From Neoechinorhynchus agilis (Eukaryota > Animalia > Acanthocephala), in assembly GCA_051530055.1 (NCBI GenBank), contig CM121342.1, forward strand, positions 14,399,480 to 14,463,479: a stretch of 64,000 nt of DNA, given 5' to 3'. A program made the position numbers and the translations under genes. Shown here one piece after another: positions 989 to 45,200 of this stretch. The number at the start of each line of letters is the position of its first letter. Within the stretch, counting starts at the first letter, position 1. The notes below the pieces were generated by a model. The model did not search any database. It had not been told where the DNA came from and was given only the letters and a program-made list of their open reading frames with translations.

Positions 989-1090
989 GCAATTTCAAAT
1001 TCACGTACCTTCCTTGCTCATTGTCGCCATAGAAACCATATCCCTGTTTAGAAGGTTTTGCATAGTTTATCAAGAATATCATATTTTCCA

Positions 1091-6436: not shown

Positions 6437-6501
6437 ACATAAATAAATGAGTAACGACAACACCGGGGACAGGATTCGCAAACATACAAACAAAAACTAA
6501 A

Positions 6502-12460: not shown

Positions 12461-15436
12461 GGGGAAAACAAATTTATCTAAAGCGTCTATTACTAACAAA
12501 CAATCAATCAAATCTTCTAAACTGAAGAGTTCATAATAACACAACTTTTGCTATTCATAATGAGGCAGATCTCTTCCCTCCGCCCACTTCGCCCTCGATT
12601 TCGGCTCGCTGTACTGTATGCGATCGCGTCATAGGCGTGACGATAAGTGGGCTCATTCGAAAACATCGCCCGGTACGATCTCGACGCCCTGGATCTTCCC
12701 TTCCACCAGTGTTGGACAAACCTTTTATCATCGACGGTCACGAAACTCAAAATGTGATGAAGCGCCTCTTACAATATCTTCCAAACACGCTCTGGAAGAG
12801 GATTCCAAAAGGAGCCAGGAACAGCTGCTGTGAAATGTTCTCGAAGCTGCTGGCAAACTGCCTATCTGAACCGACGAATACAAACTATTCACGTTTATTC
12901 GCCTTTCCAAAATTGGTTCTGAGTACTAGCCGTGACCCCGAGTCCAGCCTCACGACCACCATCAAGCAGCGGATAACCAATTTTGATCGACTTTTTGAGG
13001 AGGCTGTGACGAAAAGTTACAATAATCAAACTTTACCAAGAAACGTCCAGAAGGACCCTTCGGCCGCCGTTATAATTTGAGTAATAGGATTTCTGCCAAA
13101 TTGGCAGACGCAGATGTCCGTGGAGCGGTCAGGTTACTCAGTTCCACGGCTACGTTTGCGGACAACGACCGCTCGACACTGGAGGCGTTGAGAAGTAAGC
13201 ATCCTTCAGCTTTGCCACCGATTTTGCCCCCGATACCGGAAAAGTCGCGTCAATCGACGAGGTGCACGCGGGAGGAACTTAGATGTGCTGTATCCTCGTT
13301 CCCCAATGGGTCGGGACATGGACCCGACGGACTTCGACCCCAACACATCAAGGATATGTTGGGATTTGGAACGGGAGTGATGGGAATGAAGCTCGAAACC
13401 AAACTCGTTAATGTGGTCGATGAAATCATAAATGGACCTCTCCCACTTGAAGCAACGAATTTTCTATTCTCGGCATCTCTTTGCGCCCTTTCCAAATCAA
13501 ACGGAGATATTCGTCCGATAGCTGTGGGCTGCACTCTAAGACGTTTGGCAGGGAAGATTTTGTGTAGGCGACTGAGCGAAAGGGTAGGTGAGCAACTCAG
13601 ACCTTTTCAGTTGGGCTGCTGTACTCCATGTGGAGCAGAAGCGATAGTGCACTCCACACGTACCTATATCGACGCCTCTGCCACCCCAACGGTTGTCCTA
13701 AAAGTCGATTTTTCGAACGCCTTTAATACAGTCGATCGAACAGCCTTGCTAATTACCATTGCTCGAGAATTACCTGAAGCCTATGAATACTTTGTGAAGG
13801 CGTATGGTTCTAAGACACCTCTACATTTCAACGAGCACACCATTTGGTCCGAAACAGGCCTGCAACAAGGCGATCCTCTCGGCCCCATAGGATTTTCCTT
13901 AACAACCAATGGAATATCTCGTGAGCTCAAGGCAAGTTTGAACGTCTGGTACTTGGATGACGCGACATTGGGCGGTGACCCAAAGACAGTTCTAGAAGAC
14001 CTGCAATCCCTGCTTGTTTCTGCTGCGGAATTGGGCTTACGTGTCAACCCCGCGAAGTGTGAACTATTGCCACTAAATATTTCACATTCTCGCATGACGG
14101 ATATAATGCAGTCCTTCGAATCCGTTGCCCCAGGAATCCGATTAATCAACCGGCAAAGCTTCACTCTTCTCGGCAGTTGCGTCCTGGATGCGAACATAAA
14201 TCGCGAGATAGAAGAAGAGCTTCCTAAACTGGATCTTTTGTGCTCCCGCGTTCAAGAATTGAATGCACACGAAGCTCTCTTCTTGGTGAGAAACTGCCTA
14301 TACATACCGAGGCTTATGTTCAAGATGAGAGCAGCCCCGTACTTCCGACACACCAAACGTCTCCTTGACTTAGATGGTTTGATGAAAAAGCATCTTGAGA
14401 AGGTAACAAACTGCGCCATCACTGATGAAGCTTGGCAACAAGCTGCCCTTCCGATCAAATACGGAGGTTTAGGCTTACGAAGTGTGGCTGGTTTGGCCCT
14501 TCCGGCATTCGTATCCTCGATGCACAAGACGGAGGAATTACAGGGGGAAATTCTTTTAAACAGAATGCCGAAGCCATGCAAACTATTGAAACAGGGAGTC
14601 ACATCATGGCTCTCGCAGGCCGGTCTGCAACAAGCTCCAACCAACGCGCACGAACAATCTGCTTGGGATAAACCCTTAATCCTGACGGCTCACAACAAAC
14701 TAAAAGGCCAGATGGACGAGATGTCTCAAGCTAGACTTGTGGCCAGTTCCTCGAAGGAGTCAGGCGCATGGTTGAACGTTTTGCCAATTGGTACTTTGGG
14801 AACTTTGCTGGACGACGAGACAGTTCGAATAGCCGTCGCTCTACGTTTGGGACTTCCAACCTGTGCCCCACACCAGTGCCGATGTGGAATAAAAGTTGAC
14901 GTGCTCGGGAGACATGGACTCTAGTGCAACAGATCGAGCGGTCGTTTCCCAAGGCACGCAGAGCTCAACGCGATCATTAGCAGAGCTCTGAACTCGATGC
15001 ACGTTCCAACCATCCTGGAGCCCAGTCCCGACGGTATGACCGTTTTCCCTTGGAAAGAAGGGAAGAGTCTAATTTGGGACGCAACATGCGTGGACTCACT
15101 CGCCATGTCCAACCGGCAAGATGCTTTAGCGGAGACGGGAGGAACAGCGAGTGCCGCCGAAAGGAGGAAAGCGGAGAAATACAGTGAGCTCAAACAAAAT
15201 TACATTTTCCTTCCTTTAGGCGTGGAAACACAAGGGGCGCTGGGATCTTCGACACGAAGCTTTTGTGCCGAACTCGGACGACGACTTGCAGCACAAACAG
15301 GGGAGCGACGCGAGAGGATTTTCCTGATCCAAAGAATAAGCCTCGCAATCCAACGAGGAAATGCGGTCAGCGTCCGGGGGACGATTTAAATCTAAAATTG
15401 TCCTTTAAAAAAAAGAAACAATAAAAAGATTATTAG
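12461..15436 (+). mobile_element. CRE-clade non-LTR retrotransposon (zinc finger, RT, CCHC knuckle, REL endonuclease), near-complete, 10-bp TSD
   Basis: CTVCDRVIGVTISGLIRKH zinc finger; RT motifs GPDGLRP, RPIAVG, DFSNAFN, QQGDPLGP and YLDD; C.CG..H..C..RH knuckle; REL motifs PDG..PW..GK..WD and E.RK..KY. Flanked by CAAAAAAAAT at 12451-12460 and 15437-15446. Lesions: frameshift at ~13078, TAG at 14922, and a short linker before PDG. Confidence 0.93.
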
Positions 15437-15923: not shown

Positions 15924-17936
15924 TTAAGCAGACAGTTCAGTATTCCGCTCAACAGACGTGGGCCGCGGTATAGAGTTCGATATTGTTGGAATAGAATGCG
16001 AGCTAGTCCTTTTCACGCTGCCTTGCAAGTAATCACTTTCTGCTAATTGTTTGATATCGGGTCGCTGTCGTACTTCGTATGTGAGGCAATATGAAATAAA
16101 CGCTCGGCCTTCATTTGAAGTGGTAGGTTTCACTGGAAATTGAACATGTTTAGCTTTCAAAATAGTTTCACATTCTAGAAGTGCCGATTGCGACAGATTG
16201 TGCCCAAATGGTTTGCGGCCAAACAAACACTGAAAATAGAGGCATCCGACAGACCATACATCCACCTTCGAGGAAATCTTCGGAGGCTTCAAAGATTGAA
16301 CAAACACTTCTGGCGGTAGATACCAGTAAGTTCCCGCACCTTGAGATGTCAGATCCATTCCACGTTCAGGGTCGTATACGTCGTCGTGCATTTGCTTACT
16401 GAGACCAAAATCGGTCAGTTTTACTTTTCCGTAGTCGTTTCCAGTACCGACAAGAACATTAGCTGGTTTCAGATCGTAGTGTATAACGGGAGGTTTAACG
16501 CAAGTGTTTAAATAAAGAAGCGCACTAACAATTTGATTCAGGATGCTACGAGCTTCTTTTTCGGCCAATTGCTTTTGCTCTTTTAGTACGAGGTCCAAAT
16601 CTTTTCCATCGAAAAATTCAAGAACCGTACAAAACCAATCTTGGTCCATGTCAAATGCATCAATGAATTGAACAATGCGGGGGTGATTGACCGTTCGAAG
16701 TATATCGTTCTCACGAATACCATGACGTATGTAGTTCATTTTCTTCTCACGACTCCATTCTTTATTGAGCATGTGAATCTTACAAGCAACGTATCGAAAC
16801 TCTTTTAAGTCGTAGGCTTTATGAACTTCACTGAATCCACCTTTTCCAAGCAATTTGACCATCAAAAATCTGTCACGAATCAATGTAAATCCATTGGATG
16901 TATAAATTGCACACTTGACCAGCGCACAGCAGAAAAAAATTGGAATTCAATCTCCAAACAAAAACAACCACCTTTTCCCATTGCTGGTGCTGGTCAAGTA
17001 AGTGCAAAACGTAATGGTACAATTAATCTTAAGCTCAGGCGGATTTTGATAGAACGTACTATTATCCTCTTGAAGAAGTCTTTTCATTTCTCTAATATGC
17101 AAACTCTTTTCCTTGTCCAGTTTTTCATACTCAGCCATAAGTTCAGTTTCTTCTTTCTTAAGAGCAGCCGTCCTAATTCGAACAAGATCGTCATGTTCAC
17201 AAAACTCTCGAAGGAGAAGTTGAGGATTGTCGCAATATTCGTTAGACCATGATTCGGCGCTATCATTGTTCCTACCAAGACCAGCAGCCAAAGACTGTTG
17301 AAGTCGATTCATATCGGTTCTACGTTTGGACAGCGCTTTCTTTTCTTTTTCCAGTATCTCCCTTCTTTTATGTAGAACTTTTTGTATACGATCGAGCTTT
17401 TCGTACTCGAGACCATTCCGCCATACTTCACAGTAAGTAATCGCATGTTTCTGCGGAATGTACTGACCGAGTCGTGTACAATTCATCGATGATACATCAC
17501 GAGCTCGTTGACGATCAATCACGGCTTCCTCTTCAATCATCCGTTGAACTGCACTAGTGGCTGACGAGAGCGAAGCTTTTAAAACATCAACTTCTGACCG
17601 ACACTCTTGAAGACGACCGATGACGTCATCGCGTTCATTGAGAGCAGACGCCAATTCCATCCGTAAATCTTCTCCCTCTTCCTGACTTTGTGAAGAGCGG
17701 TCGAAATACGAAGACGGGTTAATTTGTTCTATAAGACTCAGATCTTCGACTTTTCGGCAAACGTCGCCTTGTATTGGCCGTAAATGAGAAAGAGACGACC
17801 GAGGCAAGTTTTGAGGTGAAGGTGTTTTTGCGGACGTCGATGGAGAGGTCGTCAGTCTACGCTTCTTCCGTTTGGGTTTTTCTACACTTACCAGTTGGTT
17901 ACTGGTGTGAGTTGGCACTGACGTTTCAGGTCGCAT
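15924..17936 (-). CDS. TLK: Tousled-like kinase (coiled coils plus Ser/Thr kinase)
   Basis: LLGKGGFSEVHKAYDL..VACKIH..HYDLKPAN..KLTDFGLSK..TSQGAGTYWYLPPE..ISSKVDVWSVG; the upstream ORF is in the same frame with the TLK coiled-coil pattern (EKSLHIREMKRLLQEDNS). The two ORFs are separated by an insert containing TGA. Further 5' exons are possible. Confidence 0.95.
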
Positions 17937-18135: not shown

Positions 18136-18598
18136 GTCTTCACTCGATAAAGAGTTTATCGAAAGCGTTGTGCGAACTTCTCACAAAGAGGTAGAACAAA
18201 CTCCTTTTTTGTGGTTTGAGGAGTGTTTTTAGGAAACTCTTTATCGGGTGAAGACTTCTATACTTCCTCGCATATCGACAAATCAGAACTAGATTTAGGA
18301 CATCGCTTCCTGGGCTTTTAAGTTTTGTGCTTTTTTTGGCATGAAGTCACACCGATCTCTTACATCGATGTAATTTAATCACTTCTTATTTGATTCTTTA
18401 TAGATTGGTTTGGAACTAAAAAGCCCACTAAACAGATTGAATTGAGTTTTGATTTGTCGATATGTGAGGAAGTATAGAAGTCTTCACCGATAAAGAGTTT
18501 CTTAAAAATACTCTGCAAATATAAAAAAAGGAGTTTATTCTTCCTCCTTGTAAGAAGTTTGCATAACGTTTTCGATAAACTCTTTATCGAGTGAAGAC
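18136..18598. repeat. MITE-like inverted repeat, ~155-bp arms, each arm itself internally inverted
   Basis: 18136-18291 is the reverse complement of 18446-18598; the motif TCTTCAC(T/C)CGATAAAGAGTTT occurs four times in alternating orientation. Confidence 0.88.
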
Positions 18599-19773: not shown

Positions 19774-20914
19774 TCATTAAAATATACGACCCAGCAAAAG
19801 TAGTCGGCCTAAACATAACGGCTATTTCGCTCGCGCGCGCATTGTTTTATTCGAATTTCAAGGAAATCGTAAGACGGCGAAAGCTCGAAAATGAAAATCT
19901 TTTTTCAAATACTTGATCACATCAGTTCCGAAATAAACCCATCTCGTTAGTGCAACCCCTCCATATACAATAATAAATGGAAACATTATGACGGAAGAAT
20001 AAATGTTGTTGTAAAGCCGCTGGGCATTTTCTCTTAAAACAGAAATCTGGGTATTGAATTTACGCTTCGATTTTCGTCATAAACCCACTTATCTATTTGA
20101 CACCCCGAAGGATTTTACGATGACGTTTTGCACCTACTTTTCCCCTGTCATTTTGTATATCCGCTAGTTAGAAGAGAACTTTTGGTGGGTAGAGAAGGTC
20201 GAAAAGTGAGGATCATAATTACTGTTTAGAAATCTTCATTCCTTACGTGGTTCGCAGGACGTTTTTAACCGAAATAATTATTTACCGGGCGAAAAATAAT
20301 AAACAATAAGTATAATCCGTAATATTTCTATGACGTTTCATCAACTTACAAGATACGCAAGGTTATTTAAGCTAAAACGTTAAGCGTTCAAAAAAGAAAT
20401 TTTACTATTAACTACCGATATTATTTGAGTTCGTATGCTGCCAATACCATTTATTATATTTTTTTTAAATATTCAGCACCGATCTAATTTTCGTTATCAC
20501 CATAAGTTCAAAATACCACACAGATTGAAAATATACAAATAGTTATGATTTGTCCATAGTTTGTTTGGATGAGGCCGAGATTAATAAACTACACTAAACT
20601 TATTCAGAATTGTTAAAGCATTGAAAAATAATAAAAAAGTTACGTAGTTTTTTTCGCGAGGAAAGTTGGTTAACGAAAACGATCCCATTGCAAAAAAAAC
20701 TGCATAACTTTATTATTTTTCAATGTTTCACGTAGAGGACGAAATATTAAATTACCTTTTTGTCTTAAGGTCATAACATGGGTTTTTTAACGCTTTGCGA
20801 ACCATCGGAACACCTAAAACGTTGCATGATAAGTCCACAATTCATATTTAAAACGCAGATTTGGAAAGGTCAACTTCGATTTGTTTCGGACATGAAATCA
20901 TTCACACCACCGTT

Positions 20915-21058
20915 TTCGTCTTCGATTATTATCTTCGTGGGAAAAGATACTTTCTTTTTCTTAGTTAGACCTCTCGATTTTAAACTTTTACTAATTTATT
21001 TCCCCGATATTTCACATCGGTCGGATGACCATGGTTTGTCATTGTTTCGCAAGTTAAA
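20915..21058 (-). repeat. Dispersed copy of the ~196-bp repeat family
   Basis: Reverse complement aligns to the 3397 unit (..GTGAAATATCGGGGAAATAAATTAGTAAAA..AAGAAAGTATCTTTTCC). Confidence 0.85.
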
Positions 21059-22199
21059 ACTACCAAAATATGACTTGCTTTTATTCATCTCGCCCTCATC
21101 GCCACAAAAAAAATTTGAAGGGGATCTTTAGTGCGGAAGCAACCAAGTAAAAAGTAGCCTATTTTAATTTTTGTTCGTTAAAAACGTGTCTAAACTGGCA
21201 TTGAAGCAAAAAAATGACGGCCTTGCTCGTTATCGATGCTGTTCAAAGTTAATCACCATATTAACAGTCGAATTAAAGCTGGCGCTTACCGAAACATTTC
21301 ATAGTGCCATCTTATCCATTAGTGTCCCAAAGTAACACCCTTCAACGAAGCCATTTTTCGCTCAACAATAGACGACGCAACTTGTTTCTCTTCAACTGTG
21401 CATTCGAGTCGTTTCGATGATGATGGCGGTGAAATGTCAAAGACATTTAAGAAATTGTAATTTACAGACGTCAATACAACTCACACTCTTCCTCTCTTAA
21501 TGAACCGTAAAGGTAGTTCTTTTCCTCCAGAGAAAAGGCAGAGATGTATAATTATGCTTTGTTTGTCAAAGCCAATCTATCATGAACGCATGGGTGCATG
21601 AAAAGGTAAAAAAATGGTTTATTGGTGCGGATTTGTTGATGGCTCTATCTCTCTCTCGACAGCTTATGATTGATGTAAACGAAATACTCCATCTTTACAT
21701 GTTTACGTTGTGCAAACAAAACCTTATTGTTCAATCGTTGATTTTTTGCCTCAGTTTTTTTACCGCCTCCATATTCGTGGGTTAAATCGGCACATCAGGA
21801 ATTGAGAAATTCACGCTTGTCTTACAATTTATCCTTGACGACAAGAATATCTGTCATTGTCATTTGTGAACTTATGAACCTTTGAAGTAAAACAACGTAT
21901 GCATTCGTTATGACTATCCAAATCTTGTTCGTTACATCAAACTTTTATCTCATTTTTTACGTATTTAATGAATCTGCATTTTTATCTTAATGTCTAAACG
22001 AACTTTCATAGTTTTTAAAATTACAACATTTTATCCTGTCATCTAGATTTATGTATAAACTTGAACATTCCTTTACAACATGACATTAAGACTCTTAATT
22101 CTGAACTAAGCGGACATTTTTTTGACCTTCACGAATAAGAAAAACTCGCATTGTAAATAGAAATTTTTCTATAACTTTCATAGTAGAAAACGTACAAAC

Positions 22200-22270
22200 A
22201 ACCTTGATAAAGGCACGAGATTGAGCCTCCGAAATATTTGATTCAAAAATAAATTACTTCAATTTTCTGC
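22200..22270 (+). repeat. Dispersed repeat family with TTGATAA-hairpin-CC-GAAATAT motif (also ~33770, ~40948, ~44554)
   Basis: AACCTTGATAAAGGCAC-N6-G(A/T)GCCTCC(G/A)AAA followed by AAT(A/G)AATT in several copies. Confidence 0.75.
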
Positions 22271-23533: not shown

Positions 23534-24472
23534 ATTTTGCTATTATGTTTGTGAATAGGGTTGGCACTCTCGTATTGGAATTTGGAAATTCATAACTTCT
23601 CGGTGATTGGCAACGGTCTTTAATGAGTAGTCAGTCCATACCTTACATATAGAAATCAAATAGACCTATTCGGATGACTATTTGGCTTTTACAGCGATAG
23701 TCTATTCGCATTATAATATAAAAAAGTAGGCTGAGAGTGATTTTTATTTATGAACGTTATTTGACTGAAGATTACAAAAAAAAGACAGGTTCCCCAATTC
23801 TTGAATATTCTGAGCGAATCACTAAGAAAATTCGTGAATCAGCATTTCCAATGTAAAATATTGAAGAGCTCACTTTAAAGGTGAGTGGCTCTTAAAACAT
23901 CGTCTACTTAAATAATCTTTATTAATTCCTAAGTATTTTCCCATTGAATCCACTCAATTCGTGACAAATCTGAATCTACTTCTTGAAGCGCTTTAATGTA
24001 GGCAAACATTTAATTTCAATAAAACAAATCATGCTTACATGAATTGAATAGGTACCCTAAGATTTTCGATAAAAACAATGTAAAAAACAGGCTCTCTTCC
24101 AATCGTAATCACTGTACAACTATTATTGGATTCTGAGTGAAGCGTTATTTTAATTAGTTATTCATAAATGGCAAATTGATATACAATATTAACATAAGCA
24201 TACAAAAAACTCAACAAAACAATAAGACCAAATATTTTATACATTTGACGACAATAACGTATTAATCGTCAATGATTTAGAGACCCAAACTTACGTAACT
24301 CGATCGGCTAAAGAAAAACGTGAAAAGAACGTTTAGGCGATGGCCGAATCAACAAAATAGACGAATTCGAAAATGAATTATTGATCAGTTTGAACAGCAT
24401 TTTAGCTCTTTTGTTTTAGTAACATTAAAATTCTATCCAAATGTTCCTTCGAGTAGATGTGGATTCTCACTG

Positions 24473-24656
24473 GCGAATTGTAACACACTCGAGTTTCATT
24501 GAAATCAACCTTGCGAATTTTCACGGCTTCAGCATCCTTCTCAAGCATTGTTTTCGGACTCGAATTTTTCTTCGAAAACAATGCTTGGGAAGCAGGCTGA
24601 GGCCTTGAAAATTCGCAAGGTTGACTTCAATAAAACTCGAGTGTGTTACAATTCGC
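24473..24656. mobile_element. Twin-hammerhead fold-back mini-element (~85-bp arms)
   Basis: 24473-24558 is the reverse complement of 24572-24656. HHR-like motifs at 24512-24547 (-: TGC-TTGAGAA-G..GAAA-AT-T-C-GCA) and 24582-24617 (+). Confidence 0.82.
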
Positions 24657-25499
24657 GAGTGAGAAGAATATTAAAATGCTCAACTTCATATGCCACAATG
24701 TTGTTTCTAAAGACAGAAACTAGTGAAAAAATCAAGAAAAATAAATTGCAATGATGAGCATGATTTGAACTTATTTTAAGATCTTTTGACATATCTTCCA
24801 CAAACGTAACTGCTCCAAGCGCGATGAATTTATAGGAAGTTTTAAAAATAAAAAGAGCCAATCGTAAATTTTCCTCAGGATTGCATTATTGTTACCTTGG
24901 TCGCTTGTCAACTTCCGAAAGAGATCATCAAAGAAAAATATATTTTGATTGCTTGAATCAGTCATTATCAGTTCAATTGCTTATAAATGACCGATTCAAT
25001 AATATATTCTTCTTTAATGATATCTCTCGAGTGTCGACAAGCGACCTAAATAACAACGTAAATTTTCCACCTTGGGAATATATTATAATTTTTGAAATCT
25101 TTCATCTTTTATGAAACAGAATATGAGAACACAAAGTGAGATTAACAATTCGAAAAGTCAAAATGGAACTCCCTTTTCATGGCTCCCACAAAATTTTTTT
25201 ATTTTCCTAGTCAGATCGAAAAATTGACTTTACACGGTGGATACGATTTACCGGTTTAATATTTTAATCAACACAGACAATTAATAATTTTTCGCTAAAA
25301 CTTCGCATCATTTAAAACATTCCTTTATTTACTAGAGAATATTCCGACCCATTGGTAATAATGTAGAATAAAATTCATTGGTGCAAGTATAAAAATCAGT
25401 CTAAAATATAGATTTTGCGCATTGAAGAATCGAAGCTATCAACACCGAATTGCGCGAAATGTAGTGAGTAGAAGAAAAGTAGATTCAAGTGCGTTCAAA

Positions 25500-26377: not shown

Positions 26378-27560
26378 ATACATTTTCGATTTTTGTGGTT
26401 TATCAATTATTAGTCGACGGTTTCTTTATTGACATCTCAAGTAGTTAAAACAAGACAAGGGGGGAAGTCAACTCGTCCCGTCGGTTGAGCACGATAAACC
26501 ATCTCACGTTGGCCAGCTCATCCATACGACCACCAATCCCACTTTTCACCTCTTTCGCGATGAGCAAAACTTCAGCAAGATACTTCACGGATGTCGAAAG
26601 CTTTACTCCTTGACGCCATGGTGTCGACACTGAGGAGGCCGCATTTAAATTCAATGCGATTAATGCGATTCGTAAGTTTTCACAAATAAGTATGTTGAAA
26701 AGCCTCTCGGTCTTCCAAATGGTCTATCCGGAATCGTCCGGAGTTGGACATTGCCACCCGTATTCTTACAAATAAGGCACCACATCGGACACAGTGGCGC
26801 TTTAGACCAATAGATTCTATAGATCTGTCCCTTTAGGAGACTTGATGTCGCTCGTGAATTCCTCGCTTACAAATGGAATCCGGAGGATCGGTAATGAATC
26901 GCACTTCTTTCCCTTCTTCCTCGAGAGTACGCCGATCGATTCTGCTCTATGTAGAAAGCTTCTCGATTTGCCGATCCCATAACCATTTTAAGCGAACATT
27001 CTGTTCACAACCTCAACAGCGGTTCTTTTAGCCTCCGGTGAAGATGAGCGAATCATTGCCATTTTATACATCGTAGTATAGATCGCTTGCTTCATCACCC
27101 AAGGATGGTCAGAATTTTGATGCATAACTATGGCTTTCTTGCAAGGCTTGCAACTGAGGAAGATCCGGGTCGTCTTCATTGGAAAGACGTAGAGGCCTCT
27201 CCACGAACGTATTTGTGAACCTTTAAGTAGCGCGTTAAACCCAAACGCGACCTATATGAGCCTAACACCATTCAAGATTCCATCCAGGTCAAGGATGAAA
27301 GCTTTCGACATTCGTGAAGTATCGAGCGAGAGACCCATTGGAACTTTCGCTCGTTGAATCACTGTTCATCACGAAAAAGGTGAAAAAGTGGGACTGATGG
27401 TCGTAATTAAGAGACAGCCAACGTTAGACGGTTTATCCTGCTCAACCGACGGGACGAGTTAGCCTCCACATTGGCTTTGTTTAAACTACTTTTGTAGATC
27501 GCGTGTTTTTTCAGGACCCTGAAGAAGGAATAAAGCTTCGAAATATCGGTCCAAAACAAA
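26378..27560. mobile_element. Penelope-like element remnant (- strand ORF) between diverged inverted pseudo-LTRs
   Basis: The - strand reads MHQNSDHPWVMKQAIY..RMFA*NGY..LRIPFVSEEF (PLE post-RT region). 26468-26615 is an imperfect reverse complement of 27290-27460. Confidence 0.78.
27514..27552 (+). ncRNA. Minimal type I hammerhead ribozyme (best-formed stem I in the window)
   Basis: Stem I GGACC/GGTCC; core CTGAAGA plus extra A; stem II GGA/TTC; GAAA-TA-T-C; predicted cleavage after AUC at 27547. Confidence 0.82.
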
Positions 27561-27672
27561 ACTTTTTTTTCAATCGCGTAACTTGTCTAAAAAAAGGACA
27601 ACATATAAATTATCCATAATCGATCGAATGCCCAACTTTAACGAAACATTAAATGTTTTCAACTTTTAGACG

Positions 27673-28026
27673 ATGCCAAACCAAGCTTTGAGGATCAGAA
27701 CCATTTTTACGACGGAGCAAAGGGAATCATTAGAAGAGTATTTTCAAGGGCATTCCAATCCTCCTAAGGAACAGATTGAAAGAATAGCAATGAAATTGGA
27801 AATGAACGATGGTTCAGTCAAACGATGGTTTGATAGAAAACGTCTACAAAAACGAGCAGAGAAAAATCCGGAATCTTTTCCATGTCTGATTCCAAACATT
27901 CGTGAAATGCTAAATCGTAAAGACCTTCCACATAACGCGAATCCATGTTCATATCTTCCCATGCGTCCAAAGGATTGGGGCAAGGTTGAGACTGGTGAAC
28001 TTTACGAGCAATATAAACCTAAATAG
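27673..28026 (+). CDS. Divergent intronless homeodomain protein
   Basis: RIRTIFTTEQ..LEEYF..P..EQIERIA..L....VKRWFDRKR; R5, F8, L16, F20, W48, F49 and R53 are conserved. Confidence 0.85.
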   Translation: MPNQALRIRTIFTTEQRESLEEYFQGHSNPPKEQIERIAMKLEMNDGSVKRWFDRKRLQKRAEKNPESFPCLIPNIREMLNRKDLPHNANPCSYLPMRPKDWGKVETGELYEQYKPK

Positions 28027-29424: not shown

Positions 29425-29700
29425 GATATTATCTTTTGGTAATTTTGCTACCTCGGATTTAAATTCACTAATTTATTTCCGATATTTCGTCGGATAAGCT
29501 CGTTAGCGAAATTCTTTATGTGAAAAACAGCTTCTTAACTTTCTCTCTTATACCGAAACAATTTACAACGTCAAACCTTGGGAAAATGTCGGAATTATCC
29601 AATGTGAAATATCGGAAATAAATTAGTGAATTTAAATCCGGAGTGGCAAAACTACCAAAAGAAAGTATCTTCCCCCCGAAGATAATAATCCAAGACATAT
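29425..29700. repeat. Inverted pair of the ~196-bp repeat family
   Basis: 29425-29495 (-) mirrors ~29598-29670 (+). The + copy reads ACC-TTGGGAA-A-ATGTCGGA-ATTA-TCCAATGT-GAAA-TA-T-C-GG. Confidence 0.8.
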
Positions 29701-29878
29701 TTGGATATGATGAAAAATTAAACCGACCGGAGTATCAATCTTTGTCTCTAAAGAAGTCAAACAACTCTCTGGCCATTATTCATAGTATAGAATGTTTATT
29801 TTTAATCGTGGAAATAGCTATTGCACGCTTTCTTACAAGAAACTTAATTGATCTGATGGGTTATGGATTGATTGCAAG

Positions 29879-32727: not shown

Positions 32728-35536
32728 CTGAAAAAGTCTTAGGGTCGAATAAGTGATTTTTGTGTGAGAATGGGATGCCTTGTTGATGATTCCACTTCAA
32801 AGCAAGCGTACAGAGAATAAGAAACACGAGCAACCACCCAACTATTAAGAACGCCATTTACCCTGTGCCGAAGCGCAGCTACGACCTCAACCAAGTGAAA
32901 TAACGAGACGTTTGTTCGCACAGCCTTCTTTCCCAATGGAAAATCAATGTTTTCTTCTCCAACCGACGAACGCCGTAGATCCGTAACTGGCACTTGAGAC
33001 GAAAACAATAAGATATGCTCGTCCTGCGACATAAAAAGGCAGTTGATGCAATCACAGGAAGCAGAAAAATTCTCCAGTAATGCGTATCAATATTGTCCTT
33101 TAAATTAAAGGAAAACATACCATTGCTCGCATTGATTGACCATTGGTTAAGCGGTATAAAAATCAGAAATATTGCGAATTTTTCTTCGAAGCACTATGAA
33201 GCTTAAAGTCTTTATGTGACGACAAGCGTCAACGGCTGACTACTTGAGAGGTTCGGTATTTGGGATGATGGCTTGTACCCAGTAGAGTTCAAGGCGAAAA
33301 TTTGAAAAGAGCGGTAAAGATTAGTGAACCTTGATAGCGATCATGTGAAAAGAAGTTGTAGTCACAAAACCCAAAGTGTTTTCAGAAAAGAATTCTTTAA
33401 TCTTGTTTGTGTGATCCATAGTCAGTTCACTGCGGTGCTCATACAAATACACGGACGAATAAAATCTTCCTCAAATCGGCAGACCTTTTGGTTCCTACTA
33501 TTTTTTCTGAATATCTCACAGCACATGATATTCGCTACCCATCAGTTAGCGAATTTGCGTGCATGACTGATCAGATTGGCGGTCAAACGATAGTGCCGAT
33601 AGCTCCAAGTTCTAGATCGAAATAAAAAGAATGCTGATGTTATGGTAAAGATGCGATTGATTGATATCCTATCTAAAGGTAAAATGCCGATCTTAGACTA
33701 CTTAATTTTTTTGTTTGAAGATTGAATTGTTCATGCTTTTTATGGCAAAAAATAATGAAGTAATTTATAAACACATATTGTGCCTCCGAAATATCGAATT
33801 CAATAAATTACTTCATTTTTCCACCATAAAAACAGCTGTTTCTTTGCAAAATTAAGCCAGTGACGATATAGCGCCATATAGTGTTGTTTAGGTTGCTTGT
33901 TAAAGACGAGCATTATCAATTCAATTGCTTGTAAGTTTTTTCAACTGTCGACAAGCTACTTAAACAACAATATATCTGACCACACCTGAATGCAATCCTC
34001 AATAATTCCATATATATGAATAGTGAAAAATAAGGTTTAAAAGGTGATAATAAATTAATGATTGTTTTATTAAAATTATTACTCAAATGTGAACTACGGA
34101 ATTAAATATCGTCGCTTAAAATCTTCGAAAACCAACCCAATTAAAGGTGTATACTCACATATAATACTGAATTTTAGATGTGTTGAACACTTTTAGATAT
34201 ACTTACATTTTCTATCCGAATACACCACAACTACGACAGGATCTTTCTACAAAAGCTCTTCTTGGTGTGGAAATATAAGAGAGTACTTGCATAAATCAAA
34301 CTATAAAATGAAAAAGTGCCTATCCATCATAGATAATCAGTTCATACGACAATAACAGCGAATCCGCGACGTCGAAACGGGAACTACGCTGTTTGCCTTA
34401 ATGCATGGAGAGATGAGAAAACTTACGAAGTAAAAGGATTGTAAAAACGCTAGAGCGCAATCCATAAAATAGCTTAAAATTGCAAGCATACGATTGAAGG
34501 TAGAGTAAATACCATCTTTTTGACAATTAGCTAGATTTCTCAAAATATCTTCAGATCAACATTTAGAGACCGAGGCCAATAAACCATTTTCGTAAATGTT
34601 ATTAGGTGTCTATAAATACCATTTGTCCACCGTCAAAAAGTTCGTTAATAATTCAGTGTAATAAACATAGCGAGGTTTGAACGCTCGGCTGAGTACGAAC
34701 GTCTTTCCTGTGGTCAGAATAACAAACCATCTGCGTTCCATAGGAAAAAGTGAGCTTTTTACGTTAAAGAAAAAGTAAGTTTATTTTATGGCTTGTTCTG
34801 GTAAGGTGAAAATGTGCATATTCATTTATAGCGGCAAGTACGAAGATTGCTCACTTTTTAAAGGAAAAATAGAAAGTGTTTCGAAGCAAAGAAAAATTTA
34901 TTTTGGGTGTTTTTACAATTGAAAAAATCCCGTATGCGACAATAAAGAAATTACTGTGATAAGATGAAAGCAATTGGGTGAAAGCGGGTTACTAAATTTA
35001 AACATTTGAATAAACTGATTACATTACCGGAGAGCAGCAAAGTTGTTCCCAGCAGCGTTACAAATGCACCAGCATCCAAAAAATCAATAAAAAATGAAGC
35101 ACATAGATAAAATGAACCGTTGAACGGACTCACCGAATTATGCTAAAGTCACCTTTACAGGCAAAACGTTGACCCAACTTAGGCATGTTTAAAATTTTCA
35201 CTTTTCAATAACCCATTTGGAAGCATCTGTGTTCACCGCTTATTTCAAATATTGAATCAAGAACTTCGGGATTATATGGCATTGAATGAACTTGTAAACA
35301 GTATCTTATATTATCACATTGCATGTCCAAATTTTATGTCGCCACTCTAGCAATAGTTTATTAAAGGGAAATAAAAAGTCGAATACCCACGATTATCGCA
35401 TGCGCAGGAGATTGCGGTTTGCCTATAAAATAATTTTAAAAAAGCGAGAGCAACGAAGGATAATTATTTTAATCCCGACCCAAAATACGCATACAAATAT
35501 TATCGAGCAAAATCCGTCGTTGTACTATCGTTACGT

Positions 35537-38500
35537 TTACAGGTTATCCCACTGAGTGATTCGTTCTTTAAGCCGGTCGAAAATGTTCCACTTTGGCATT
35601 TGAGATGATATCCATGCGCCGGCTACATGTCCAATTTGTACTGGCATATCTTGTTGGGGAGCAACCTCACGAGAAATATTTGGGAGTGACGACTGCTTTG
35701 TCCCAGTAAGACCTGGTTTATGTTGTTGCTTCGGAGTGATCTCTCGAATTTCCTGGCTGGATACACATCGCTGAACATTTGCTTTTTGTTTAGCAGTTTT
35801 TAAGCCAGTGTCTGATGGCTGTGGCTGGATAGAAGCCTTGCTTAAAGTCGTCGAACTCACAGTGCGACTACGGGAATTGGAGTCATGCCTTTCTTGTCGA
35901 TTAAATTCATTCATCAAATGCATCCAGACATCGGGGTCTGTGATTTTCACCTCTTCAATCATATTACTAGGCACATATCCACGCTGTCCTGTAGTTTCTC
36001 CAACATAAAATCCATCTTGTCCGATTTCTCCGTAAATTTTAATAAGTTGGCCTTCCTTAAAAGTCAATTCCTCGTGGCAAGATTCAAGATTTGGAGACAT
36101 TTCCAGAGGAAGATAATCGTAGAGGGCTACAAACAACCTAGCTCGTGACTGAGTAGTACGACGGGTTGGCTCAGTACGAGACCGAATTTGTCCGCTGCTT
36201 ACTGAGTTGGAACGCTCCAGAACCGTTTCGGATTTCTTCGTTGATACATTATCGGGTGATTGTATTCTTTTTGATGCAGGTAGCAACGATGACTGTGGTA
36301 AATTTAAGCTAGCCAAATCAAACACTACTTCGCCTGATATTCCTTCATCGGTGTCCGGTCTTATTGTCAAATGATATTGCTTTTGCTCACTCAAACCAAT
36401 CAGTTTAATTTTATTAGTTCCAGGCTGAGCTGTACAGACGTGTTTTTCATCCAAGAGAATTATATGGCTCAGTAAATTGGACGGCGGCCTCCAACTAACC
36501 AGAACACTTTGTGAATTGATGTATTTAAGTCCGATTTGGTCCGGTTTTAATTGCGAACCGATTCCGAAGACTTGGGTGCAATCATTTCGCTTAGAAATTC
36601 CATATTTTGATTTTAGCAGGACGCAAATTCGGTGAGGCTAAAATGCAAGTGAAAATTGTTAAATCTTTCATCAGGTAACCTTTTAGAGGATGTGATTCGA
36701 GTAGCTGCCATAAAGCCGATTATGCCAGAATTTATGAGTCAGCGAATGTGAAAATAAAGAAATTTGTGTGTATCATTCCCATAAAATTATGTGAAGCATG
36801 ATTAAAATTAAAGCTGAAAATGAATTTCATTTAAAATTCTGATGACAATCCTCTTCGGCTCATCTCATCGAATAATCATCCCCAAAAAGGATTAAATGTC
36901 GTACAAAACCTTGCTTAAATCTATGTCATCAAATACCGCTGACGTTTGTGTTCGTTCAACGTTTTTGTGCAATCGTTCATCAATAACAATTTCGTATTCA
37001 AAAATCACAGATAGGCTCGGTAACTTTACCGGTGGCTTCCACGTGACTTTTATTTGCCGTGGATTTTCATCCATGACCTGCAAGTCTCCAGGTTTAGGGA
37101 TTGAGCATATTGACTTCGTTATGGCCGGCTTCTTATTTCCATTTGCCCAGAAGCAAAAATCTTTTCGAATATAGGAAAGTAAGCAGGCGTTGAAGTCAAA
37201 AAGAGAAAGGCCAACCTGGATATTTTATTTCATTCACAACTCTGATTATTTTCGATGGTACTATTCCTTTGCTGCCTCGGCGATTAAATGCCATGAAGTG
37301 CCCATCAGCAGTCTCATGACCGACCAGTAAAAGAGTTTCATTTTTTTCAACGGCAAGGTATCTACTATCAAAGCACTTGTTTACTGAGTTTCGAACCACT
37401 GCCATAAAGAAAAGAGGCTCGAAGGTCGGTGTTTGGTTTCCTTCTTCCCTCAGAATAGTACCATGATGCACGCGGAGGGGTTCATCTTTATGGCATCCTC
37501 TGGGATTGTAGTAGCCCCTTTCATTATCCTCCTTATCTACGCTAAAATAAAATTGATTTGTCTTAAACGGAATTGCACTATACCTACCTAATTGTTCTCC
37601 CGAATCGGTATTGGTTGCTTTTGTAGCTTTTTCACCTCCGTGGAACTGACTGTTTTGGGAATAGGATCGATTGCGACGGTTTGTGGCGTATCCGTTGCGC
37701 GAATACCGTTGTGATCGAAGAACAGGAAGTGTTTGACTTGATCGGCGCTTTTCAGACTTTCTAAGACTTTCCATCTCCGTCATCATCTCATTTCTACTCA
37801 GCATAAGCATTTCAGCTTTTCGTTCCAATCGATTAACTTTTGCCTATAAGTGGGGAGATTTATTAGATGCATATTAAAATCGCGATATCGTAAACTTAAA
37901 TTTAAGGACAGGGTGCCATACAGATAAATATGTTCTTTGGCGATTTTAAAAAAGAGACTGTTTTATTGATTTCAAATATTTCGTCCGTCTCGTCGGACTT
38001 CTTCAGGTTGTAAATTAATCAGTCTCGATTTTTATAATCGCCAAAGAGCACATATATAAATGAACAACTTCTTTACAACAGATAAATGTTGAGATAGCAT
38101 AAGGGCCAAAAGTTCTAAAGAAATTTAGCCTGAAGCAGGTCGATTCTAAGCATACTACCTGATAAGTAGATCAAAACTTGTTTAACGAGTATCATTCTTC
38201 ATCAAAGATGTTTAAACGAAAGGAACTAAATCGGTACCGACTAAAATGGCACCGATTAAAAGTCCATAACAATGTAAGGAATCAAGAATTATTACTAAAA
38301 TTTTATTATAAAACGTTCAGTAAACGCCTTGGAATAAAATGACGCGAAACCGTAAGTTACATACCTTCAGATTGTCCACTTCGCTCTCACCGCCGATATC
38401 TATAGTCTAAAATAATGGTAGAAGCTTAGTGTAATGAGCATGAAGATTTAGAAGCAATTTGTAAGCTAGTCAAATTGCAATCTTAATGAGCCTCACGAGA

Positions 38501-41500
38501 TATTTGTGTTCGTTCCCCCGAAATAGAAAGCATTTATTTCCATGCACAATTTTTTTCTATAAACCGAGTTTATCTTTTTACAACATTCACCGATGTGTAA
38601 ACCATGGGAACCCCTTCAGAACTGTGTTCAGGCCAATGAATCTAAACATTTTAAAAGAAATCTTTTCCCTCGTGCATGTTCATGCAATAATACATACCTG
38701 TGCTGAGTTTTGCCGGTTAAGTGAAACAAATGATGAACGTCGATTTGAATTAGCAAGTTCTGATTCTAACTGTTTTCTCTTAAAAATTGGAGATGAGATC
38801 AGTCAAAAATTCGATCAAGTAGACATACCATTTCAAAAAGGGCGTTCTTGAGGTTCCGATTCTCATACTCGGTCAAAGATAGTTTGGCGCGTATGTGATT
38901 TACAAGCGTCGATTCATTTTCAAGCAAGCGAAGCTTCTCGTCTCTTGTAACTAAGTCCTCGTGTAGGCGCTTCATGTCCTCCTTAAGACGCTCATTTTCC
39001 TTAATAATATCCCCATTGTTGATATTCGCTTTCTCCTGACTCCGTCTTCCTTCAAAAGGTGGTATTCTACGTTCCTTACTCAAATCCGATATAAATTTTT
39101 CTCCAGATTCACTCTCTTTTAAAAGCTGGTTGATCTTCGCTGACTGAGATTCGCTGACAGTTACCATATTTTGTCTTTCACTTTTCAAAAGTTTTACTTC
39201 ATCACACATACGATCAAATATCCCAATAATACCTCTTTGCCCCTCGGAAGTTAGAAATCACAAATGTACTAAGTTACTAGCTTTCTCAAAATTAAAGTCC
39301 CCTAAGTTTCAATCTCAAAGTTAAAATATCCTTTCCGGCAGTCGAAGGATGTATCCTTGCTTTTAGATTTGTAGAATAAACAATATGCTGAATTTCGCAG
39401 GTTGAATTCCATAAGAAAATATACCGACCGTAAGAAGCGATCGGGCTTTATACAAAAAAAGGACTAAGCGAAAACAAAAATTCGTAAATTAAAGGAAATT
39501 TGTGTTTACTACTCTAAGATTATCCGCACTTAGCAATTAGAGATTCAGTCAACTATAACACACTAAACACGATTTTCAAAAAATCTTTAGTGAGCCAGGA
39601 ATTCCCTACTAGGGCTAAAGGGATATCATTGCAGTAAACTCCTGTGAACGTAGTCATTCTCTAGCTTCTTCTCAAGATTATTCCGCTCATCATATAGATG
39701 CATAAGGCGCTTTTCATACGAATTTTTTACCAAGCTTAGCTGATTGGTCAAAGTTTGACAAGTACTTTGTATTTCGTCTCGATCTTTTATAATTAAACTC
39801 GTATCGCTGTCTCGCTTCCGGAGTTCAGCATTTACCCTTTCGAGTTCATTCTTTTCTTGATGGGAAGTGTCTAATGAGTTTTGAAGTCGCTTGATCAGAA
39901 CGTCTTTTTCATTGCTGGCCTCATTTTTTATTGGTGCAGATGACGAAGCTGAGATTACTTGAACGGATCTGTCGACTTTGCGAGTAGGATCGATGGTTGA
40001 TGTGATTTTTATTTTCTCCGAGAGTTCTTCATTTTCTTTACATTTTGCGGCTAACTGTTTGGAAAACCAGATAACTTACAGAGTGTATTTGAAGTTCGAA
40101 TGACTAACCTTGGCTTCTAAAGCTTTTAGATTATCCTCCACAGGCGCAAGTCTCGCGACTTCCAATCTCAATGCTTCGTTTGTATCCTTTAATGCCTCAA
40201 AGAGCATGGGATCGATAATAGATGATCGAGTGGACATTTTTACATTCCAGTGTTATGGCTTGGATCTAGCCGTGTAAGCAAAAGAGAAGAAAAATCTTGT
40301 GTTTGAATACTTTGGAGAAGGGAAGGAGAAATGCATTACACTCAGCTAAGGCGAATCGATAAAGTGTGCGTAATTTATATAATGTAGAGGCACGCAAAGA
40401 AGAATGAGAAAATATCCTTTCTGAAATACCAGATATCGTGCACACGTCCGTAGGAAACGGCTCAGTGCTATCATTTGCATTATGTGAAGTTTGAAAAGTG
40501 TCGGTTTCGCGAACAAAGTGGCTACTAATCTCGACAATGTATCCGGAGAGACATATGTATGCGTGATATTCGGAAGGGTAATTTTTAGAAGGAGTGTAAA
40601 GCAAGCTGCCTTTCGATATGTTGGTCCGAATTCGAAAAGCGACATTTGACAGATTGTTCTGATGTCTCCTAGTAAATTAGAATTCCCCTTAGGAATTTTG
40701 TTTCTCGGCTGTTGCTAAGGCAAGTTTGCCATGCAACCGCTTTTGCTAGCTAGTTGGCATTGCCAACAATGGCGCCGATTCCAGTGTACCCGGCGAATGT
40801 AATTGGAAATACTGCCACTGTTTATGAATCAAGGTACTTAGACTAGCGACTTCAATAGTCACTTAAAAAAGTGGGTTGCTTAAAGTATTTTCTTCGGGCA
40901 CAACCTTGTTCTTTTATCAAGGTTGCTTGCAAGTTTTTAAACACAGCAACCTTGATAAACGCGTACAAGATTGTGACTCCGAAACCCATCGGATTTTAAA
41001 ATAAAATCATTTTAATTTATCCGCCATATAAAACAACCAATAGGAACTAATGATCACGTAAGGCCAATCACCGAAAATGAATTTCGTTTGCTCTGAAAAA
41101 CAAATGGCCCTATTTAAACCATATAATTTTCAGTGATAAAATTTACGCTTGGATTTGCATCATCTTTAAACGCTGAAAATTGCGACTAGCATTTTGAGGC
41201 AAATCCTTAAATGAACGCGTCAAATATTCCAGCGCAAATTGTAAGTTCTACTATCCTTAAGATTTATCCTCTACTGACTAATTTATCACAACGAAAAATA
41301 CATCCCGTCCTAAATGTGCACTTTTGAACTTAGTGTGCTTCATGTTGGCGGATCCAATAACAATATGCATTGTCTAATCGGCAAAATATTAAGCCGTGTC
41401 AATTGATTTACAGATTTTTCGACGTCGAAATCCGCCGCTTAACCTACCTTATATCTCATTAACTCTGCAATGGTTTTTTCAAGATCCAATCTTTCTTTTG

Positions 41501-42241: not shown

Positions 42242-45200
42242 GATTGAACGTCAATATCTTTCAGAAAGTTAGACACACGAGTACGCAAGTGAGTTGCAAG
42301 AGAAGAGCAATGAGCTGTCGTTTTACGAGTAGGCAGTTCGTTTTTTCTCGTAAAACTCTCTTCGTAGGTGTATTGTCGAAGCAAGGGAGGCAACGATGGT
42401 ACAATCGTGTCTCCCGTTATGTGAATGAGGAATCAATCTAAGAACCGATTTATAAACTTTTTGTAATTAAGAAACCAAACGATTGTGGATGAGAATTGAA
42501 AGTACCCGAAGGAAGTGTAAACGAAATACAGGTGAATGTATTTTCCGACTGGAACGACGCAGAAATGACTGTAAACACGAGGTCATACTTAGAATAGATC
42601 GCTATGTTTGTGGATATCACCACGCAGACTGATAGTTACATGGAGATGGGGCTCGATTCGTCGCGCTCGCTGCGGTAGCGACTGAGCAAAGTGAAGAATG
42701 CATGCGACTCTGACTTGCAAATTGGTTCCTCGTGTATTAGAGTGCCTAATTTGCAAAGCAAGCAACACTTAAAAGTGCGACGGATTGAATGTTGATTTGA
42801 AATCATAGTGATGTTTGGAATACTTGGCACTGAAAATTCTCGTGGAACTGAAAAGTGAAGTAAAATAAAAAATTTCTATTCACTGTCTAAGGAAGCTTGA
42901 CGGCGCCTCAGTCGTCTAGGAATTCATGAAAAACAATTTCAACTCTAGTTCATGCTTTTTTCAATTGAACAGGCGACCATTTAGGGAATTTAAATGTAAA
43001 ACATGACTGAGCGACGCTTTTTTAAATAAACTCATTTTCATTTATTCAAGCTTTTTTTTGAAATTAGTGATTTCATGGCAACAAAATCTAAAACGAAGAA
43101 TAAACTGCTCATAAAATCTCTTGTGGAAATAAGCATTCATTAAAAATACGCAACCCATATAGATGAGACTGATATTTGTTTTAGTTAAAAGCAACGTAGA
43201 TTTCCTTAAACTGTTTTGCAGCGATTGCCTATTGTTTATGTGTAAGAAACCAACTTTTCGTCGCGAATTACATTCGATTGGTTAGATATGTTGTTATTTT
43301 AGTCGCTTGTACCAAAACCCAAGAAGGATCGTTAAAGTCGAATGTATATTTTGACTGATTGTATCAGTCATTTTATCAATTCAAATTGTTAAAGTATTAC
43401 GTTCACCTGCGGTTAAAACACTATATCGATTTGAATTGATAAAATATCGGGTGTCGAGGGCCGAACAAAATATTAACAAACCAACCTTTGTTTTTGTACT
43501 GATTATGCTTGAGACACAAATACTGAAATCGAAAAATGTTATCTCGTTTCGGAGGGTGTCAAACTCGCGTTTTTTGTTTTTTCCTTCTACTTTCACAAAA
43601 TTTCGATGTGAACGACGTGTCTCATTAACAGAAGCATAAACAGCAGGGAAAATGTTTGCGGATATTACAAAAAAATTAATTCAACTTTTCCGCCATAAAA
43701 AGAAACATGAATAATTCAATCTTCAAACATATTACTCTTAGAATCATCGATAATAGCATATAAAGATTCAAAGTACGTTTTTTGGAATCTGTCATTCCGT
43801 CGATCTACGACACGCCTATTTCCCCACAAGAGATGAACCACAAGGAAAGTCATCCATAATCTGTTCGGCACAACCCATGGTGGCATCAGAAAGGTTTGGC
43901 ACACCAACCTTGCATCGAAAATTGCTAAATGCGTTGCTGCCATGCACGATACACAAAATTCACTTCGTCTAGTCTACAGGAGTAATGGGAGTTTCTTGAG
44001 GTTTCAAAGAGAGAAAGGGCAGCACATTAAACTCATTTTGACAAAAGAAGAACTATTCTCACTTTGGGTGAAAGTTAAGGCTGAGGTAAAGGGTTTCATC
44101 TGGAACAAAGTATTACCATCGCGAAAATGTCAGATCTCTTTCCTGTTGCTTGGTCTTTACATGCTTATCTAAGCTTTATCATATCAAGAATGTCACGCGG
44201 CTTAAGTCGATCGCTGCACAAGATTGTCGTCGATCGCACAACCGGAAATTCAATTGGCGAAATCCACTTACGGTAAAACGATTGGCGGGTGTCCTCATCC
44301 GGAGAGGAGTGCTTAACGACCACCAGATGTGAAACAGGTCCGTATCTTCTAGGAAGCCTCACAGCACTTTCGATAGCACGAAAACGAGATCGTTTTTGGT
44401 CGATTAAAGGAATCGCAACTTTTCGATATTGATCATAGACGACGTGTTTTTATAGACAAGTGATCAGACTTTAATAGTTTTCATTATTTTACCGACCATT
44501 AAATTACGGCGATACTTCGGCACAATCTGGTGCATTTATTGAGATTAATTTGCAACCTTGATAAAGGCACGATATTGTGCCTCCAAAAGATCGAATTTAA
44601 TGAAATTCCTTCAATTTTTCCAATATTAACAAACAAGAATAATTCAATCTTCAAACATGTTAAATTACTGCAAATCTCACAACTACTTTTGAGATCTACG
44701 ACTTCCTTTGAAAGTGACTCGCTAAATTCCTCTTAGCTTGCACAGATCACCGTTAATAAATCGAAATATCTCACTTGAAGCCCGACTCTTTTTAATTTAT
44801 TCATGAGACTTGTTATATCTTGCAATCTAACTACGAAAACTGTCCAAGATATTGTCTCAATATTTCGAGTGGAAATGACTCGAGCGGGGTAAATGTCATG
44901 TGCAAATATTGCCTAATCAAAAGAGTTTCCTATATGACTATGAGCGTCTAAATTAATTAAAAGCGATCCCATTATCTTCGGGTATTTAAATTTTTCCACT
45001 CCAGTTAAGATAAGCACATAGATTTCTAGCATGTGAACGTTTATCGTGGTTATGCTCATTTGGCCGATGCCTGACAATTTTGTTCGTATACGAATTTCTT
45101 GCACTTAACAAATCCTAAAGACTTACAAGAAGCGGTCAATAAAAACGTTCATTAATGAGCACTTTGTGGTTAAATCCGATAAACTCGTAAAAACCGAAAA

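Follow-up and report, generated by a model that had tools for sequence, protein, structure and literature searches.

What do the hammerhead-like motifs scattered through a 64,000-nucleotide stretch of the acanthocephalan Neoechinorhynchus agilis genome represent, and do they include a form of the ribozyme that has not been described before? The stretch (GenBank assembly GCA_051530055.1, contig CM121342.1, positions 14,399,480 to 14,463,479 of the forward strand) is referred to here as the window, and coordinates are counted from its first letter unless another locus is named. An initial annotation had proposed an unrecognised variant family of the hammerhead ribozyme (HHR), marked by an extra core nucleotide, covariation of positions 3 and 8 and a palindromic stem III, with the motif at 27514-27552 ranked first. 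These three traits are the published definition of the minimal HHR (min-HHR) (PMC4209133), and there is no new ribozyme class or variant here. On sequence evidence, the motifs are very probably the already-described min-HHRs that lie at the 3' ends of Penelope-like elements (PLEs), present mostly as truncated and decaying copies.

Detection of hammerhead motifs

Strict matches were defined by a Y3-U-G-A-N-R8-A core with a Watson-Crick 3-8 pair and 0 or 1 extra nucleotides, a stem II of at least 3 bp, GAAA followed by 2-4 nt, U and H, and a stem I of at least 3 bp. Seven matches were found in the window (3036+, 6397+, 27514+, 46651-, 46724+, 52062- and 62874-), compared with a mean of 0.06 expected by chance from 300 dinucleotide-preserving shuffles. 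All seven carried the extra nucleotide, none being found without it by a descriptor that allowed either state. Once repeat copies were collapsed the matches represented five independent families, and the enrichment is far above chance at this level as well.

Because a MAFFT alignment of all 12 HHRs misplaced the stem II gaps, we seeded a covariance model with seven sequences of equal length, five from the window and two from outside it, and searched with filters off. This first model recovered five non-seed sites at E ≤ 1e-3 (6003-6047(-), 46646-46689(-), 46722-46765(+), 3034-3077(+) and 52058-52101(-)), and the focal site, also non-seed (27514-27555), scored 23.6 bits (E = 0.02) where background began at approximately 17 bits. 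A second model, built on 13 sequences, gained 52443-52486(+) (E = 0.015) and 52228-52273(+) (E = 0.16). Overall, the window holds 13 model-supported sites and approximately 11 decayed relics, the latter recognised by homology and inspection (24507-24549(-) and 24582-24617(+); 22199, 33777 and 44553; three tandem units in 3397-3911; 29573(+), 29488(-) and 21013(-)). The initial figure of about 20 sites was therefore fair, and the motif was present at every coordinate that had been listed.

Core architecture and covariation

The hammerhead core was intact in 11 of the 13 model-supported sites, the exceptions being 52228 (A14 changed to C) and 62925 (U16.1 changed to G). Positions 3 and 8 did change together, the pair being Watson-Crick throughout the 12 sequences compared (C-G in eight, U-A in four, other in none), and G10.1-C11.1 was retained in 11 of 12 distinct sequences. 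The extra unpaired nucleotide between A9 and G10.1 was likewise confirmed at all 13 window sites (G or A), and it recurred at all four sites of two further N. agilis loci, L001 and L002 (U, U, G and A). Helix II measured 4-6 bp at most sites and 3 bp at 27514, with helix I ranging from 0 to 5 bp. In place of helix III, 11 of the 13 sites carried a self-complementary four-mer from 15.1 to 16.1 (AUAU or AAUU), as the proposed palindromic stem III had implied. Positions 15.2-16.2 read UA or AU in 11 of the window sites and in all sites of L001 and L002, with 62874 (UU) and 62925 as exceptions. With only this 4-nt self-complementary stretch available, helix III is impossible in a monomer and a second copy is needed.

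Standard pairs filled 87.2% of cells in the 13-sequence model alignment (helix I 83%, helix II 90%), compared with 52.5% after shuffling (0 of 500 shuffles reached the observed value), a comparison tempered by the alignment having been fitted to the structure and the sequences picked by models that reward pairing. As a control, sliding the partner columns by 1-3 positions reduced pairing to 22-47%. Seven of the eight stem pairs showed changes on both sides, so that the covarying stems of the initial annotation held up, and between the two arms of the palindrome at 62827-63009 an A-U pair of stem II is replaced by G-C, a compensatory change. Since the copies near 46.7 kb, near 24.5 kb and at 52228 are related, as few as one or two events may have given rise to the U3-A8 cores.

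Such covariation speaks for the fold having been under selection in active source elements. Selection acted on those elements and not at the window loci, because about half of the copies carry inactivating changes. The earlier argument from density, that roughly one motif per 3 kb indicates selection on catalysis, is not supported: the density is a measure of how closely PLE 3'-end debris is packed here and does not speak for selection at individual sites.

Association with Penelope-like elements

The proposed tie between the hammerheads and PLEs was borne out by a remnant of a GIY-YIG endonuclease (EN) at 2639-2983 (+), which contains one internal stop and exceeds the Pfam cut-off for PF01541 (25.3 bits against 22.6, E = 1.9e-5). 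The min-HHR next to it at 3036-3073 (+), identified by both the strict descriptor and the model (C3-G8, extra G, AATAAA after), begins approximately 50 nt past the last aligned EN residue (2983) and 22 nt past the stop codon of the EN frame. Head-to-head with this copy lies a PLE-type reverse transcriptase (RT) fragment at 2123-2467 (-), which contains DVDALFTNVP and QKDGIVMGSPLAP, shows PLE-like motifs 4 and 5, and has a weak Pfam match to RVT_1 (E = 0.07). An inverted-repeat arm that is 98% identical to the one bearing the 3036 HHR carries a further min-HHR at 52062-52099 (-), again found by both descriptor and model, with an EN tail at 52186-52145 (-). Another decayed GIY-YIG remnant, in a 5'-truncated copy at 51602-51920 (+), abuts an inverted tail-only fragment (51531-51601).

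Two 5'-truncated PLE 3' ends, each consisting of an EN tail, an HHR and the element's tail, form the inverted arms of a head-to-head palindrome at 5949-6494. This palindrome contains the best-formed min-HHR of the window (6397-6436 (+); stem I GAGA/UCUC, stem II GCAAGG/CCUUGC, extra G, GAAA-UA-U-U), with an EN C-terminal relic upstream at 6145-6231, and, in its left arm, the mirror copy 6007 (6003-6047 (-)), in which C11.1 has changed to G. EN remnants upstream of an HHR were detected for 3036, 52062 and 6397/6007, and also at 10445 of the N. agilis locus L001. For the copies near 46.7, 24.5 and 62.9 kb and at 37967 and 52228/52443, we infer a PLE 3'-end location from common tails or inverted partners.

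Outward-facing HHR pairs occupied three further short palindromes besides 5949-6494, at 24464-24665, 46599-46812 and 62827-63009. The second of these is a 214-bp twin-HHR palindrome with a U3-A8 min-HHR in each arm: 46651-46687 (-) on the left (UGA-UUGAUAA-G-GCGAGG UCU CCUCGC-GAAA-UA-U-U-UCA), which together with 6397-6436 is a textbook example of the motif, and 46724-46760 (+) on the right, with one stem II mismatch. Its centre is common to palindrome 24464-24665, where the left arm holds a decayed U3-A8 copy (24507-24549 (-); UUGAGAA, stem I UGC/GCA, poor stem II) and the mirror copy (24582-24617 (+)) has A6 changed to G. In the palindrome at 62827-63009, the left arm carries a min-HHR at 62874-62911 (-) (stem II GACC/GGUC, GATAAA after) and its mirror, 62925, spans 62923-62967 (+) (stem II GGUC/GGCC, with G at position 16.1). 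Rfam searches returned miRNA-like matches at 24510-24619 and 46654-46759, which were rejected as the long hairpins of head-to-head PLE arms; a read-through RNA of a head-to-head pair would form such a hairpin, explaining the spurious matches.

The remaining sites were more eroded or stood alone. At 52443-52486 (+) a weaker min-HHR, followed by AATAAA, has an A-U closing pair in stem II in place of G10.1-C11.1 and a poor stem I, and at 52228-52273 (+) a U3-A8 copy of the family near 46.7 kb is inactivated by GAAC replacing GAAA. The min-HHR at 53576-53620 (-) has stem II GGAGA/UCUCC, GAAA-AU-U-U and a 2-bp stem I, with AATAAA after it. An intact core with a 5-bp stem II and no proximal stem I (0-2 bp) was found at 37967-38011 (-), within a 125-nt hairpin (37925-38060) with a minimum free energy of -43 kcal/mol (z = -7.7); this hairpin is built by flanking inverted repeats that resemble an inverted tail-only PLE fragment. 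Decayed U3-A8 HHR-like relics also occur in a short repeat family at 22199-22246 (+), 44553-44618 and 33777-33821.

The order at the PLE 3' end is the end of the EN ORF (open reading frame), the HHR, AATAAA within approximately 10 nt, and then a tail of approximately 55-85 nt. What remains of most copies in the window is a short 3' end, truncated on the 5' side and in many cases head-to-head with an inverted truncated partner, and RT and EN were never found together in one intact ORF in the window.

Protein searches with the EN and RT fragments each returned one N. agilis protein as the sole database relative, that for the RT being unnamed. In L001, an HHR with a U3-A8 core and an extra U at 10445(+) (10440-10484; GUC-UUGAUAA-U-GUCGGA AUUA UCCGAC-GAAA-UA-U-C) comes after an EN domain at 9997-10221. 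An inverted partner lies at 9869(-) (9830-9874), the arms spanning 9801-9918 and 10396-10513, and (A/G)ATAAA follows each HHR. L002 contributed two more HHRs, one C3-G8 and one U3-A8. To judge by these sequences, the HHR module is conserved in position and architecture between the window and both loci, with differing stem sequences.

Signals flanking the hammerhead

The AATAAA-like signal that the initial annotation had placed after the motif was confirmed, with AATAAA starting 7-13 nt past GAAA, or 3-9 nt past the predicted cleavage site, in 10 of the 13 sites (3036, 52062, 6397, 6007, 37967, 46651, 46724, 53576, 52443 and 52228) compared with a background of 5-6%. GATAAA takes its place in the pair near 62.9 kb and in one L001 copy. 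At the RNA level, AAUAAA 3-9 nt past the cleavage site was found in at least six diverged families as well as in L001. The hammerhead and the polyadenylation signal might form one fixed module, on whose approximately 70 nt cleavage, polyadenylation and possibly splicing would compete; we hold this to be unlikely, and if true, such a module would decide the fate of the transcript.

On the other flank, TTTTAGAT(G/A)A, a pyrimidine tract with AG, abuts the 5' side of stem I at 3036, 52062, 52228, 52443 and 6397. It could be a splice acceptor, by analogy with the Penelope element of D. virilis, in which an intron ends at helix I (PMC4209133), or could represent stop codons of the ORF.

The focal site at 27514-27552

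The motif initially ranked first proved to be a solo copy with a weak stem II. At 27514-27552 (+) a solo min-HHR-like sequence (GGACC-CTGAAGA-A-GGAATAAAGCTTC-GAAA-TA-T-C-GGTCC) combines a 5-bp stem I and an extra A with a stem II, GGA..UUC, of only 3 bp, one of them a G.U pair. A competing GAAG/CUUC helix, which ties up G8 and A9, is favoured in the minimum-energy fold, and the region folds no more stably than shuffled sequence (z = -0.84). Within the 64-kb window the site has no repeat family, EN remnant, AATAAA or inverted partner. These same features would be expected of a chance match that is no PLE relic, a reading we consider very improbable: only 0.06 strict matches are expected per window, the site was recovered at E = 0.02 by a model in which it was not a seed, and it possesses the extra nucleotide, the 5-bp stem I and GAAAUAUCGG, which is common to the N. 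agilis-type family. The motif lies 23 nt outside an unrelated inverted repeat (26439-26566/27363-27491), and a homeobox exon lies 118 nt downstream.

Proposed mechanism and alternative explanations

In active source elements, according to the literature, stems I and II would fold around a CUGANGA/GAAA core or the isosteric UUGANAA core, and helix III would not be formable in the monomer. Two copies would then pair through the self-complementary A15.1-U15.2-A16.2-U16.1 to give a 4-bp helix III in trans, these copies being either tandem pseudo-long terminal repeats (pLTRs) or two RNAs, possibly joined by the element's protein. By analogy, the PLE transcript would be trimmed through cleavage by each core after H17 (U or C). 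A head-to-head pair places no two sense HHR copies in one transcript. Protein-assisted cleavage has been described for one PLE HHR (PMC11167929), and cleavage as dimers is attributed in a review to Lünse et al. 2017 (PMC6765202). In our dimer co-folding the 4-bp trans helix III was not predicted, domain-swapped stems or an 8-10 bp GAAAUAUUUC duplex appearing instead; this duplex would compete with the core, and no weight was placed on co-folding. An extended palindrome, AAAUAUUU, seen in approximately half of the lineages, was judged not significant, the sequence being AT-rich.

Several results, together with the circularity in pair counting described above, weigh against reading the motifs as PLE min-HHRs or against their activity. 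The Rfam hammerhead models (Hammerhead_1, _3, _II, HH9 and HH10) gave 0 matches across the whole window, at the gathering score or at E ≤ 10, and no hammerhead was returned from 91-nt slices around 6397 and 27514 either, as is to be expected of models that require helix III. The window yielded neither a full-length PLE nor an ORF flanked by a direct pLTR pair, and PLE coding context was not detected at the solo sites 27514 and 53576. Inactivating changes are present in about half of the copies and, in combination with the lack of a full-length element, mark the window copies as relics. PLE min-HHRs also cleave poorly in vitro, even as dimers (PMC4209133), and for an Anolis element no reads ended at the cleavage site and HHR mutants still inserted in vitro (PMC11167929).

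Such observations lead to a further possibility, namely that the module is kept for a role other than cleavage, as a structure for recognition or initiation by the PLE RT or in 3'-end processing through polyadenylation, with the hammerhead-like core tolerated or parasitic. Consistent with this, AATAAA is fixed 7-13 nt past GAAA in most sites and in L001, the module sits within approximately 100 nt of the element's 3' end, insertion in vitro is unimpaired in HHR mutants and reverse transcription begins in this region (PMC11167929). Moreover, HHRs are absent from Naiad PLEs, which thrive all the same, and Craig et al. considered that HHRs are perhaps parasites of PLEs (PMC8557442). However, what is conserved across diverged families is the catalytic core set (3-8 covariation, G10.1-C11.1, GAAA, A15.1/U16.1 and an H17 that is not G), which a protein-binding hairpin would not need, and fungal PLE HHRs with a stable helix III cleave well (PMC4209133). 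A purely non-catalytic role is therefore improbable in our assessment.

Several sites might also be short non-autonomous units, retrozyme- or SINE-like, that borrow the PLE 3' end, a suggestion prompted by the ~200-bp palindromes and by a tandem array. Between the palindromes at 46599-46812 and 24464-24665, both the arms and the central spacer, GAAAATTCGAGT, match (46682-46735 against 24587-24536, 87%), and the arms are equal in length; because the spacer is common to the two loci, the sequences suggest that the twin-HHR palindrome was copied whole and not formed twice. The array (3397-3911 (+)) consists of 197-nt units derived from a PLE 3' end, with solo units dispersed at 20919-21025(-), 29572-29702(+) and 29425-29488(-), each uniting a decayed N. 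agilis-type HHR with a tail near-identical to that of the N. agilis PLE 3' end (GTCGGAAyTATCC...GAAATATCGG-AAATAAATTAG). An origin of animal non-LTR retrozymes from PLE pLTRs has been argued for (Li et al. 2026 preprint), and by analogy the array resembles a dead non-LTR retrozyme. Yet a retrozyme is expected to hold an intact type-I HHR in each unit and the core is mutated in every array unit seen, the palindrome family numbers only two copies in the window and could also stem from segmental duplication, and the copies at 6.0-6.5 kb and 2.6-3.15 kb hold EN remnants and so are plain 5' truncations. We regard non-autonomous units as a possibility for some of the sites, with the evidence leaning against it, and retain decaying PLE min-HHRs as the explanation for the set as a whole.

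Other features of the window

Host sequences in the window included a tousled-like kinase at 15924-17936 (-), with best matches in bdelloid rotifers (62-65% identity), the homeobox exon downstream of the focal site (27670-28023 (+)), an RLL/RTRAF exon (5278-5760 (+)), a gene or exon for an SH3-domain protein (35537-37828 (-)) and a RING-finger ORF (1058-1546 (+)). Two further groups of retroelement ORFs were considered as carriers of the HHRs and rejected. The first, a 615-aa non-LTR ORF at 13077-14924 (+) with an RVT_1 domain (YLDD) and a Cys/His-rich C-terminus, is LINE-like and lacks GIY-YIG, with related fragments at 47362-48050 and 10604-11335; the second, at 55444-58436 (+), encodes the aspartyl protease, RT and integrase of a Gypsy-like LTR retrotransposon. 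A separate integrase-like fragment lies at 49868-50344 (+). Short palindromes of foldback or MITE-like form without a hammerhead motif were found at 18136-18598, 20616-20728, 24889-25056, 40899-40975, 43370-43445 and 53722-53835, and no hammerhead was detected in a 327-nt tandem repeat at 1-986 (2.4 copies, 94% matches, with a 53-nt sub-repeat).

Comparison with known systems

The window thus presents a high local density of the usual PLE min-HHRs, and its importance is mainly for annotation. A small covariance model finds min-HHRs where Rfam does not, and the published motif, its extra nucleotide and U3-A8 core included, gains independent support from the covariation. The link between HHR and AATAAA and the copying of twin-HHR palindromes as units are leads, not findings. 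Further examples of PLE min-HHRs were reportedly given by Lünse, Weinberg and Breaker (2017, RNA Biol).

The extra unpaired nucleotide between A9 and G10.1 is also known, as an A, from the HHR of the chrysanthemum chlorotic mottle viroid (CChMVd) (De la Peña and Flores 2001, as cited in PMC4209133). That ribozyme differs in being type-III, with a full helix III and tertiary loop contacts, and the shared nucleotide is a resemblance, not evidence of common descent. Animal non-LTR retrozymes (PMC7229834) likewise consist of ~200-nt tandem repeats with a type-I HHR related to PLE pLTRs, a likeness confined to the array at 3397-3911, but the array cores are all mutated and the main sites of the window are dispersed or inverted and not in tandem.

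With canonical EN-bearing PLEs (Neptune and Penelope/Poseidon) the window shares PLE-like RT motifs, the C-terminal GIY-YIG EN, the HHR near the 3' end, the truncation, the inverted partner and an optional tail extension, but here these occur as fragments only, with no full-length ORF between two pLTRs. PLE insertions are known to be heavily truncated on the 5' side, with a 5'-truncated partner in inverted orientation, optionally a tail of 30-40 bp, and an HHR near the 3' end, and HHR-bearing Neptune and Penelope/Poseidon families were described from an acanthocephalan by Craig et al. 2021 (PMC8557442).

The closest counterpart is the metazoan PLE min-HHR itself. In the metazoan genome searches of Cervera and de la Peña (2014, Mol Biol Evol), relaxed min-HHR descriptors were used alongside a separate U3-A8 descriptor (PMC4209133); the concern that descriptor searches would miss these motifs is not supported, although in practice the Rfam models do miss all of them. 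Near-constant AATAAA 3-9 nt past the cleavage site, the TTTTAGAT(G/A)A tract and a coupling of such signals to the HHR have no mention in the PLE hammerhead literature covered. The hallmarks reported in the 2014 study were G10.1-C11.1, a palindromic 15.2-16.2, a long helix II, a short helix I and high variability with compensatory changes, together with dual motifs on opposite strands 100-700 bp apart (PMC4209133). The window motifs correspond to this description as type-I hammerheads that lack a real helix III and have an unpaired nucleotide between A9 and G10.1, a longer helix II, a short open helix I and U3-A8 variants, located, at the sites with EN remnants, in the terminal repeat or 3' end of a PLE, with opposite-strand pairs and compensatory changes, and their architecture is without difference from that of the published min-HHRs.

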